A stretch of 64,000 bases of DNA, taken from positions 295,859 through 359,858 of the forward strand of contig RHPI01003599.1 in the NCBI GenBank assembly GCA_009103225.1, written 5' to 3'. Shown piece after piece: positions 3,361-56,242 of this stretch. Each line of letters starts with the position of its first letter. Position 1 is the stretch's first letter. Below the pieces are notes generated by a model, which saw only the letters and a program-made list of their open reading frames with translations, had not been told where the DNA came from and made no database searches. Position numbers and translations under genes: made by a program. The stretch is from Chlorokybus atmophyticus. Lineage: Eukaryota > Plantae > Mesostigma and Chlorokybus algae.

Positions 3361-3661
3361 NNNNNNNNNNNNNNNNNNNNNNNNNNNNNNNNNNNNNNNN
3401 NNNNNNNNNNNNNNNNNNNNNNNNNNNNNNNNNNNNNNNNNNNNNNNNNNNNNNNNNNNNNNNNNNNNNNNNNNNNNNNNNNNNNNNNNNNNNNNNNNNN
3501 NNNNNNNNNNNNNNNNNNNNNNNNNNNNNNNNNNNNNNNNNNNNNNNNNNNNNNNNNNNNNNNNNNNNNNNNNNNNNNNNNNNNNNNNNNNNNNNNNNNN
3601 NNNNNNNNNNNNNNNNNNNNNNNNNNNNNNNNNNNNNNNNNNNNNNNNNNNNNNNNNNNNN
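3361..3661. other. assembly gap (N run)
   Basis: N characters. Confidence 1.
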
Positions 3662-27631: not shown

Positions 27632-28746
27632 AACCTGTCTACCGTATTAGCAACTTACTTGGCTTATGTGGCTTATGTGGTCTACAATAAGGCTATGTGT
27701 TGGATCAGACATATCGGAGGCATATAAGCCATATACCAAAGTACACATCAATAGTTGTACAAATCGTTGTTAAAGGAACTGCTATCCTACAAGTCAATTG
27801 CAACCTTTCCTTCCGCTGCACATAACGCCTACCTTTGTAAAATGATCACTTCCCTTGCCTACGCCCAAAAGCATGCAATCACACGCGTGTAGCATACCGT
27901 CATCTATAAGCTGGTGCGTTGATAGAGTTTAATTGGGATGTGATGTATGTTCTAATATTTATTTATTTATTCTATTGAGTGTTGTGACTGCATTGCACAT
28001 GACCTCCAGCAAATGATGAACTAGTTAAGTTAAATAATTCACATAACTGAGTTGTACACTTGGGGCATAACGATGGAGACCATGCAGTCAAGACAGCATT
28101 GTGTATGAAAGTGGTATACGGAGATGTATTGGCGCCATGCCCTGCAAGCAATCCACCCGAACAACTATGTTGGAGTACCAACGTAGAACGCCAAGCTCAA
28201 GGATGCAAATGTGTACGTAAGTCCGGAAGGCCAATGTGTGCAAACGTGCACGGCCATATACAACCCACCGGCTACTGCAACATTGATCTGATAGCATGTA
28301 GCTGTTTATTGTTGGGGATTATACCGCCCACAAATGTTGCAGACTCCAGATGCCTTCCCAAAAGTGTCAAAAGTCCTAGCCGCCAGCGGGATGCAGCAGT
28401 AGTGTAGACCATCGGGGGAGAGCAAGTACACATGGCGAACGCACCAGCAGGGTAGACACCAAAACCGATACCAGGTGCAACTCGAAAACAATCGACCACG
28501 ACAACACCATAGGACGCCAATTATGAAGGGGGCAAGATCTCCGCCGTAGCATGTGCATATTTGCCCAGGCTTCATACCAGCCATTAACGCATCAACGCAT
28601 CAAGCAACAGGCATTGGGTCCATCAGTTGTAGAACTAGCAAACTCTGTGTTATTTTACAGTACTTCAAGACTTGCGCCTAATGCAGTCACACTACACAGC
28701 CAATACAAGGATGCGCGCACATATGCGGCGTAACATCCTTTGTACA

Positions 28747-31030
28747 CTAGAACTCAAGCTCGCCTCGCAGCACAATAACCGCGCACCCACCCACCTTGAC
28801 AGTCTGTATGTTGTCCGGGTCCCCAACCACCTCCACATCCGCCTTCCCCGGCCGGTTCATCCAATGACCCTTGGTCACACAAACACAAAGTGCTTGAGAC
28901 ACAACACAAGGCTCACACGCGCGCACGCGCACACACACACACACACACACACATACTGACCCTCGCTCTCACCTGCTCTGCGACGAATTTGGGGGTGTCA
29001 ATCAGTCTGTACTTCCACAGGTATGCTGCCATAGACCCCGTGCCGGATCCCGTGAAGGATTCCTCGAAGAGGTCCGGTGGCGTGCCAAAGTGTCGCGCGA
29101 AGGTGTGGGCCTCGGGCGTCACGCCGCCCAACGCGAACAGGTGCGGACTGAGGAAGTCCGCCTTTGCACGGAACGCCTCGTACGCGCGGATGTCAACCAC
29201 CTGAGCCTTACGAAGAGTGTCCAAGTCCTTCACGGGGACCATTAGCTGCGGAGTGCCTGTGCTCACTGTCTGGAGCGGCGCATCTGCATAAAGCATGCTG
29301 TCAACTCTATACGCACGCTTGCACGCACGCACGCACACAGGCGCGCGCGTGCATGCACACACACGTGCAGATGAATGCATACACGCATGCGCGCGTGCGC
29401 ACTTCTGATACCCATGCATGCACATTCATGCATGCACACACGCACGAAAACGCATACGTGCGCACGCACTTGTGCACAGACATACACCTTCGCACCCGCA
29501 CGTACACAATGCAGGCGCGCAAAGTTGCAGGCATACCAGGCATGGCATCGTCCTCGGTCAGGCCGAATAGCGGCATCACGTCCCTGGCTTGATACAACTT
29601 CATAAACACCGGCGGCAGCTGGTTCATAACAACCTTCCAAAACCAACACAACTCTATCAAACCCGTGGACATCAACTCACTGTTATCAAGCAATAAAAAC
29701 CACTCTCACACCTTCTCAACACGGCCGTCGCAGCCCGCAATCGCCTCCACTTGTATGATCTGTCCAACAGACGAGCCGAGTTGCAACGGGACTGTTACAG
29801 AGTTGCGGCCGTTGAATTGCATCCGCCCGCACTCGAACAACGCGTATATGCCGCCGATTGTTGTGTTGCCCGCCAGCGGCAACTCCTGCGCACACGCGGC
29901 AACATAAATGTGCGTGCTTGCCTAAGCAATGTGCATACATGTTTGCGAGGGTTTGCACACCTGTGGGCACATGCTTGCAACTAGGTAGGTAGACACACAG
30001 TCACACACAAACACATGCATGCACACGCACGCAACAAAAGTTCATACCACTTGTTCAGCACCAAACCACTCAATACATGGTAATACATGCTAGCTATACG
30101 CACTTTTGCAACCATACGCACACCAAGCAAGCTACTACTCAAAGCGAGTCCTCTCTCACCTGTGCTGAAGTGAAGTAGCGCAGCCTCACTTCAGCTGACG
30201 AGTCCTGCGCCCGCAGCACGAAGGCCGTCGTGGACAGATTCATCTCACGCGCAATGGCCTGTTGTTGTGCAACAACAACAACATTTTCTCAGGTGAGGCA
30301 AACCTTCGAGACCGACACAACAAGCGCTTATGCATGTGCGTGTGCACGCAAATGCACACACACACACGCGTACGTGCACTCACACATGCATGTGTGCGTG
30401 CATGCACAAGTTCACACAAACGTGTCACACCTGCATGGTTGGGATTGTGAAGTCGTCCGCATCGAACACCACCACGCACGGGTTGCCCGCCAGCGGCGAG
30501 GCTGTGAAGGTGTCCACCTGCGTGATGATGATGATGATGCAATCACGGCATCAACATGAAATGACTAGTACTCGTTGCTGACATTCAAGCAAGCAGAAAG
30601 CAAAGAAAGAAGACAGCACGCAAGTGCCTGAAAAAGAAGGGAGGGAGAATAACAACACATCAAGATTGGACAAAGGCAACACAAGATGAGACAAAGGCAA
30701 CAGTAACCAAACAAACAGCACACAGACCCTGCGCTGAGAACATCTCTTACAGACAAGGGAGTTGAGAAAGACAAAGTAGTTACGAGATATGCCAAGCAAC
30801 ATGCTTGGTGTGACTTGCATGCATAATTGCTTGCTTGCTTGCATGCTTGCTTGTAAGCATGCCGTGCCACTCCAGCAATCCTCTCAGCTTCATCATCACA
30901 CCTGTACAAACTGGTGTGCTGGCAGTCCGTCCGCCACCAGCGGGCTTCCTGGCCGCTTCACCCCACTGCCAGAAGAAGCAGCGGTGGAGGCGAGGCCAGG
31001 AGCAGAGGAGGCGGCGGTGTCGGTAGCCAT
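28747..31030 (-). CDS. phzF: PhzF/phenazine-biosynthesis-like isomerase (DAP-epimerase fold), 339 aa, catalytic residues substituted
   Basis: Exons 31030-30902, 30517-30431, 30258-30160, 29885-29712, 29633-29537, 29283-28973 and 28869-28747 join in frame. Motifs are QVDTFTASPLAGNP, AREMNLSTTAF, ELPLAGNTTIG, VSTGTPQL, FARHF, EESFTGSGTG, EQGHWMNRPG and VKVGG. Confidence 0.92.
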
Positions 31031-31568
31031 GGGCCTAGTATGGGGGACAGCAATCACCAGTAGCAGCAGGAGGAGTAGTAAGAAAAGTTGTTGACAAGTC
31101 GCAGTCAGCCGCCGCCCGCCTCAATATCGACTTTTCAAGAGATTCTGCTGTTAGGCTTGTGATTTTCTGTCTCATGCGTTTGCTTTGCTGCACAGAGGAA
31201 GCGCTATCATACAAGAGTGAAGCTTGCTCTATTGCTCTAGCAGAAGCATGCATGGCACAGACACAAGCACATATGCATGCGTGGTGTAGCAACCACGTCT
31301 CTCCGCCCCCCCACNGCCCGCCGCCGCCGCCGCCACCGCCACCGCCGCTGAGACTAGTGCAAGAACTGCTGCTTGCTTGCACACAGTGTGCGTCCTTTTC
31401 TCCAACTCCAAATGCGTCTTTGTCGTTTTTCTGACTTCGTTCGTGCTGCATAATGCACTTGCGTGGTACTCTCCACCTCATGTGAGCTGTGAGAGTGTGC
31501 GGCATGCTGGCATGTGGCATGCAGGAAGCCAAGCATTCATTCACCCCCCCCCCCCCCACCCCCCCCCC

Positions 31569-31993
31569 NNNNNNNNNNNNNNNNNNNNNNNNNNNNNNNN
31601 NNNNNNNNNNNNNNNNNNNNNNNNNNNNNNNNNNNNNNNNNNNNNNNNNNNNNNNNNNNNNNNNNNNNNNNNNNNNNNNNNNNNNNNNNNNNNNNNNNNN
31701 NNNNNNNNNNNNNNNNNNNNNNNNNNNNNNNNNNNNNNNNNNNNNNNNNNNNNNNNNNNNNNNNNNNNNNNNNNNNNNNNNNNNNNNNNNNNNNNNNNNN
31801 NNNNNNNNNNNNNNNNNNNNNNNNNNNNNNNNNNNNNNNNNNNNNNNNNNNNNNNNNNNNNNNNNNNNNNNNNNNNNNNNNNNNNNNNNNNNNNNNNNNN
31901 NNNNNNNNNNNNNNNNNNNNNNNNNNNNNNNNNNNNNNNNNNNNNNNNNNNNNNNNNNNNNNNNNNNNNNNNNNNNNNNNNNNNNNNNNNNNN
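31569..31993. other. assembly gap (N run) flanked by poly-C
   Basis: N characters. Confidence 1.
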
Positions 31994-56134: not shown

Positions 56135-56242
56135 NNNNNNNNNNNNNNNNNNNNNNNNNNNNNNNNNNNNNNNNNNNNNNNNNNNNNNNNNNNNNNNNNN
56201 NNNNNNNNNNNNNNNNNNNNNNNNNNNNNNNNNNNNNNNNNN
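56135..56242. other. assembly gap (N run)
   Basis: N characters. Confidence 1.

Follow-up and report, generated by a model that had tools for sequence, protein, structure and literature searches.

The PhzF-like gene on the minus strand of the 64,000-nt stretch of Chlorokybus atmophyticus DNA analysed here (referred to as the window) raises the question of what becomes of a PhzF-family protein when the residues that carry catalysis in PhzF are replaced in an otherwise intact reading frame. To our knowledge, PhzF proteins form a very large family, and nearly all of its members have no assigned function outside phenazine biosynthesis.

The gene extends from position 31030 to 28747 and comprises seven exons (1020 nt; 339 codons plus stop), with all introns bounded by GT..AG. 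Exon 1 (30902-31030, minus strand like all features of the gene) carries the start codon (31030-31028) and encodes an N-terminal extension of ca. 35 residues, after which homology to the bacterial N-terminus sets in. Exon 2 (30431-30517) opens the PhzF domain with a GNP motif in which the equivalent of PhzF Asn18 is kept. Exon 3 (30160-30258) encodes EMNLSTTAF, where a Thr codon (ACG, 30231-30229) stands in place of the Glu45 equivalent, and exon 4 (29712-29885) encodes LPLAGNTTIG, with an Asn codon (AAC, 29867-29865) at the His74 site and Thr as the next codon, at the Pro75 site; outside this motif, exon 4 is the most divergent portion of the algal protein. Exon 5 (29537-29633) ends in phase 1 and is bordered by the transcript joints 29631/29710 and 29283/29537. 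Exon 6 (28973-29283) encodes the second half-domain with the motif EESFTGSGTGS, in which a Glu codon (GAA, 29062-29060) occupies the Asp208 site and is followed by Ser for the next Pro, while T-G-S is kept. Exon 7 (28747-28869) ends in the TAG stop codon (28749-28747), and the transcript joins 28868 to 28972.

Alignment of contigs from public sequencing runs to positions 28600-31200 confirmed the earlier note in its statement that the reading frame is intact over seven exons and carries the Thr, Asn and Glu codons. A 1365-nt transcript contig from run X1 (study P1, 2013) covers exactly the seven exon blocks with 0 differences from the genome, and contigs from run X2 (study P2, 2021) display the same joints with a single difference, a G-to-A change at 29114. 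This change is synonymous (CCC to CCT in Pro252) and constitutes both the sole difference between genome and transcripts and the sole polymorphism seen between strains. Five of the transcript joints have CT..AC ends, equivalent to GT..AG on the minus strand, and the sixth (28868/28972) adjoins a skipped microsatellite and is visible as the adjacent record positions 305 and 306. The transcribed region further includes a 5′ leader of at least 159 nt (31031-31189, with contigs reaching 31189) and a 3′ untranslated region (28600-28746), the transcript contig extending past 28600 (position 37 of record 1 of run X1). The PhzF-like gene is transcribed and spliced as modelled, although contig depth cannot quantify or rank its expression. 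At the three codons, where reads with Glu, His or Asp would have spoken for a canonical site, the spliced RNA contigs of two independent studies carry Thr, Asn and Glu instead. These matching transcripts rule out sequencing error, mis-splicing, mis-annotation and RNA editing as the source of the three codons, and the remark that Glu-to-Thr needs two base changes, which had been used to argue against sequencing error, holds as well.

A number of further features surround this transcript. In the leader, an upstream ATG at 31175 opens a uORF of 46 codons in another frame. This uORF stops at 31035, 4 nt short of the main ATG, and may restrict how much of the PhzF-like protein is translated. Ala, Ser, Gly and Pro abound in the N-terminal extension encoded by exon 1 (ca. 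35 codons), charged residues are few, and no bacterial relative has a counterpart of it, with the alignment starting near residue 36; the extension may direct the protein to an organelle or form a disordered tail. TG/CA microsatellites lie within intron 6 (28911-28964) and intron 3 (29991-30038), and both were skipped as repeats in the read alignment. Within intron 1, positions 30827-30862 give a 36-base match, with loose ends on both sides, to a 3128-nt contig of run X1, which may reflect a short repeat common to another transcript. Runs X3 and X4, deposited under two other organism names, match intron sequence of the gene without a difference and behave as DNA; they probably stem from this same alga, differently named or present in a mixed sample, and not from independent species. 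Assembly gaps (runs of N) occur in the window at 3361-3661, 31569-31993 and 56135-56242, of which the gap at 31569-31993 lies ca. 380 nt farther upstream than any base seen in transcripts and hides part of the promoter region.

Family membership was examined exon by exon, against both family profiles and PDB chains. Matches to PF02567 were collinear for exons 2, 3, 6 and 7, which correspond to positions 1-29 (23.8 bits; E = 3.7e-5), 30-61 (35.4 bits), 146-234 (26.8 bits) and 245-281 (14.1 bits), respectively. TIGR00654 likewise matched exons 2, 3, 4, 6 and 7 collinearly, the match of exon 4 (positions 70-94) being weak, and the ESM Atlas confirmed the family assignment and revealed nothing beyond it. 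When exon 3 was aligned to PDB chains, its Thr fell opposite the catalytic Glu of YddE and PhzF (SE-T/S motif), and alignment of exon 6 to 3EDN and PA4716 placed its Glu opposite the Asp of ED..TG. Exon 4 alone gave no PDB match, and the equivalence of its Asn with the His74 site was obtained via the bacterial relative P0107. Over its whole length, this protein can be aligned with PhzF (1T6K), and its AGHP then falls on Ala72-Gly73-His74-Pro75 and its LEDPFTGS on Glu207-Asp208...Thr211-Gly212-Ser213. The alignments of exon 3, exon 6 and P0107 to PDB chains thereby bear out the assignment of the changed residues to Glu45, His74 and Asp208 of PhzF. In view of its 53-60% identity to relatives that match PDB chains of the PhzF family end to end, the algal protein would adopt the two-domain DapF-like fold.

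In PhzF itself, Glu45 acts as the proton shuttle, and His74, Asp208, Gly73, Gly212 and Ser213 hold the ligand (PMC4586147). More specifically, Asp208 holds the substrate amino group, and the clamp on the ligand carboxylate involves the Gly73 backbone and Thr211-Gly212-Ser213, with roles for Asn18 and Ser44 (PMC4586147). Replacement of Glu45 by Ala, Gln or Asp inactivates the enzyme in each case, and Glu45 has been called absolutely conserved in orthologues (PMC5524880).

The nearest relatives of the algal protein were collected by a word search with the stop-free frame around exon 6, in which only the exon was scored and candidates of 94-297 aa were seen. This search revealed more than 570 proteins, nearly all of 296 aa and with 64-75% identity over the exon, and those with names derive from Anaerolineales, Anaerolineae, Chloroflexota and a Leptolyngbya. 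A profile search extended the family to more than 6,500 members at E <= 1e-20. Local alignment of the joined algal protein with the bacterial relatives gave an overall identity of 53-60%. Where the alga carries Thr82, Asn112, Thr113 and Glu270, all full-length relatives (213/213) carry Glu, His, Pro and Asp, and Pro occurs in 212/213 at the position of algal Ser271. Invariance throughout the subfamily argues that Glu, His, Pro and Asp are essential there too.

Conservation of the remainder of the protein, as put forward in the earlier note, was equally apparent. Among 60 columns that are invariant in 111 relatives, the alga keeps 56, and the four exceptions are Glu to Thr, His to Asn, the adjacent Pro to Thr, and Asp to Glu. 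Compared with an overall identity of 60%, retention of 56/60 has a probability of P = 4e-9, a value that covers the branch as a whole and not the time after the last change. That all three catalytic residues should be found among the four changed columns has a probability of P = 1.2e-4. At least six nucleotide changes fell within the catalytic motifs, whereas the remaining 56 invariant codons, the 12 splice sites, the frame and the stop codon are intact. The ligand-clamp residues, namely the Asn of GNP, the Ser of NLS, Ala-Gly and Thr-Gly-Ser (equivalents of N18, S44, A72, G73 and T211-G212-S213), are also kept, and second-shell changes are found at P113T, P271S, A276G and G279S.

The rarity of this constellation was assessed through an exhaustive HMMER search with exon 6 against 1.84 billion representatives, which yielded 241 matches, of which the best 150 were read at the catalytic sites. 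Thr at the Glu site was found in none of these best 150 of 241 representatives. Glu at the Asp208 site, where the 213 nearest relatives all have Asp, is by contrast the natural state in 17/150, each of the type E-H-E. Because E-H-E is this common in the wider family, the Asp-to-Glu change is unremarkable on its own, which leaves two radical changes out of three. The claim of three rewired signature residues consequently stands for Glu to Thr and His to Asn and is weakened for Asp to Glu, and it had missed the adjacent changes of Pro to Thr and Pro to Ser. Among bacteria, the proteins P0242, P0270, P0235 and P0161 carry Q-Q-V, Q-D-D, Q-H-D or E-R-E at the catalytic sites; inactive-looking PhzF homologues thus apparently occur sporadically in bacteria, and loss of the Glu is not without precedent.

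At the DNA level, a degenerate pattern for the Thr motif was validated by its one match in the window and gave 0 matches in 185,579 prokaryotic species genomes and 241 million metagenome records. The corresponding pattern for the Asn motif gave 3 matches in the same collections, all by chance, with no tblastn similarity at the three loci. A second species with Thr, Asn and Glu was found in none of the representative, profile and DNA pattern searches, and the exhaustive representative search contained no algal orthologue, the best representative being 63-68% identical. An algal orthologue longer than the 94-297 aa seen by the word search would escape it. Profiles combining a scaffold with the exons were affected by MAFFT, which misplaced exons 4, 5 and 7; profile A3 was usable but dominated by the scaffold, and A7 was no better. 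In the search with the scaffold-dominated profile, the algal protein, expected at about the 87th place, was absent among the 120 matches listed. It seems that the algal protein itself is either absent from the collections searched or beyond the matches listed, so that the failure to find orthologues carries little weight. Among the sequencing runs, X5 of study P2 contained 6% of the words and may represent a diverged orthologue.

Two candidates that had appeared related were discarded: P0135 (335 aa; E-H-N), taken for a eukaryotic homologue, sits on a frameshift-ridden bacterial metagenome contig, and P0134 is a fragment. P0138 (319 aa), from a EukProt transcriptome, is a eukaryotic homologue with canonical E-H-D; it is rich in Asn, Lys and Ile, looks AT-rich, does not lie near the alga in the tree, and may represent a separate acquisition or a contaminant.

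Regarding the origin of the gene, a quick maximum-likelihood tree of 78 proteins placed the alga inside a tight, Anaerolineae-rich clade, beside P0064 and P0086 (SH-aLRT 92, not starred). The algal end branch measured 0.73, about twice as long as those of these two neighbours (0.30 and 0.36). Nesting within a bacterial clade, together with six transcript-confirmed spliceosomal introns, is consistent with an old transfer from a bacterium to an alga. A literature search gave no account of PhzF for Chlorokybus or for gene transfer into algae. Examination of the genomic neighbourhoods of the bacterial relatives revealed no conserved partner and neither a phz cluster nor phenazine genes. As phz neighbours are lacking there, the ancestral substrate was probably not a phenazine precursor.

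Three codon states that none of the 213 nearest relatives shares are thus found in an expressed gene whose remainder is conserved. Our preferred reading, to which we assign a probability of roughly 0.6, is that of an expressed bacterial-type PhzF-family protein that has lost its catalytic apparatus and kept its ligand clamp, with a slight lean to a non-catalytic binder. In this scenario, a gene of Anaerolineae-like ancestry would have become a functional nuclear gene, gaining six spliceosomal introns and the N-terminal extension. On the algal branch, the proton-shuttling Glu would then have changed to Thr, the His to Asn with its neighbouring Pro to Thr, and the Asp that holds the amino group to Glu with its neighbouring Pro to Ser, whereas the residues that determine the fold and clamp the ligand would have been retained. 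With the ligand clamp intact, a small molecule that bears a carboxylate probably still binds in the pocket, presumably one like that of the bacterial ancestors. Judging from the mutagenesis of PhzF, isomerisation through a Glu-mediated proton shuttle would no longer be possible, and the ancestral chemistry has probably been lost while the protein stays under selection. In predicting this loss of activity, we extrapolate from a distant relation, Pseudomonas PhzF (121 bits with P0107).

It is equally conceivable on sequence grounds that the site has been re-tooled. Glu270, which offers a longer carboxylate at the Asp208 position, could then serve as a single general base, with Thr82 and Asn112 hydrogen-bonding a leaving or polar group, an arrangement that we regard as possible but not likely. 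We are similarly hesitant about its outcome, which would be an elimination, another reaction or another substrate, as opposed to the two-point proton shuttle of an isomerase. Concentration of the changes in the catalytic motifs, accompanied by second-shell changes around an intact clamp, resembles remodelling more than random loss; in other subfamilies, a third-site Glu is consistent with function (E-H-E in 17/150), the gene is expressed, and the Cys-to-Thr exchange of the proline-racemase type offers an analogy from general knowledge. Relaxed selection limited to a dead active site would yield the same pattern, however, and with no second species found to share Thr, Asn and Glu, there is no sign of a conserved new active site. 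The fuller version of this proposal, in which an early-diverging streptophyte alga re-tooled an acquired pocket by removing the Glu shuttle and the His and by making the longer second carboxylate the sole base of a PhzF-family reaction not described before, acting on an ancestral-like ligand, appears rather unlikely to us. Against the nearest relatives, the substitutions are far from chance (P = 1.2e-4), and the new chemistry or substrate and the pseudo-enzyme suggested in the earlier note fit the sequence equally well. The pseudo-enzyme reading fits a relaxation confined to residues needed solely for catalysis, and base rates together with the lack of a second species conserving the new site lead us to lean slightly towards it.

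Loss of function might in turn have affected the gene as a whole, making it a recently inactivated copy, a pseudogene in the making that selection no longer maintains although transcription, splicing and the frame persist. A single lineage known to carry Thr, Asn and Glu and no orthologues found, an end branch about twice that of the nearest relatives, and bacterial relatives with degenerate sites (Q-Q-V, E-R-E) would all suit such a course. Neutral drift that had introduced at least six changes in the motifs would, however, also have struck the 56 other invariant codons, which are untouched; neither the frame nor the stop codon nor any of the 12 splice sites is damaged, expression was seen in two studies, and the one polymorphism is synonymous. 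Because these codons, splice sites and frame are kept and mRNA is made, the motif changes do not reflect decay of the whole gene, and we consider recent inactivation quite improbable. Even less probable, to the point of being only a slim chance, is that the ancestral reaction has been retained through a subfamily chemistry that, unlike that of PhzF, is independent of these residues. The bacterial subfamily is indeed not linked to phenazine genes and differs from PhzF at His155, which is aligned to Gln. Against such independence stand the invariance of Glu, His, Pro and Asp in 213/213 subfamily members and the fact that E45A, E45Q and E45D each kill PhzF (PMC5524880).

This locus encodes a natural, expressed member of the family whose swapped residues are precisely the catalytic ones, with hardly any other invariant residue altered, and it offers a clean test case for the loss or change of DapF-fold chemistry. 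It would also exemplify the fate of a horizontally acquired bacterial enzyme gene in a eukaryote. If binding without turnover is true, the algal protein could help to find the substrate of thousands of bacterial relatives; if it is merely a dead enzyme, its interest would be modest and local.

Among known systems, the closest counterpart is the uncharacterised 296-aa subfamily of Chloroflexota/Anaerolineae and some cyanobacteria (P0107, P0086, and P0034 from Leptolyngbya sp. FACHB-261), which is 53-60% identical to the algal protein across the domain as a whole and 64-75% identical within exon 6. It shares with the alga the same core length and the motifs GNPC, AIAREMNLS, PLAG, QTVSTGTPQLMVP, FARHFGTPPD, FTGS and AEQGHW, but differs in having Glu, His, Pro and Asp at the catalytic positions (213/213), no introns and no N-terminal extension. 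Pseudomonas PhzF (trans-2,3-dihydro-3-hydroxyanthranilate isomerase; 1T6K, 1U1V-1U1X, 5IWE) belongs to the same Pfam family, with AREMNLS and AG(H)P near-identical and the T-G-S clamp and Asn18 kept. Unlike this true PhzF, the alga has Glu45, His74 and Asp208 replaced and its gene is eukaryotic and intron-bearing, with no phenazine context in the bacterial relatives. The best PDB matches to exons 3 and 6 and to P0107 are E. coli YddE (1QY9) and Bacillus 3EDN (for P0107, E = 8.6e-40 and 7.8e-35), both of which we take to be structural-genomics members without an assigned function; in contrast to the alga, they have kept all three residues, namely the Glu, the His of CGH and the Asp of EDP.TG. 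Somewhat further afield, proline-racemase-like enzymes have a related DapF-like fold, and PF05544 gave weak matches on the bacterial relatives. In that group, trans-3-hydroxy-L-proline dehydratase is a Cys-to-Thr variant of a two-base epimerase, in which a catalytic base has been replaced by Thr. From general knowledge, it differs from the algal protein in belonging to a different family, in having Cys and not Glu replaced, and in that its variant is conserved across many species.
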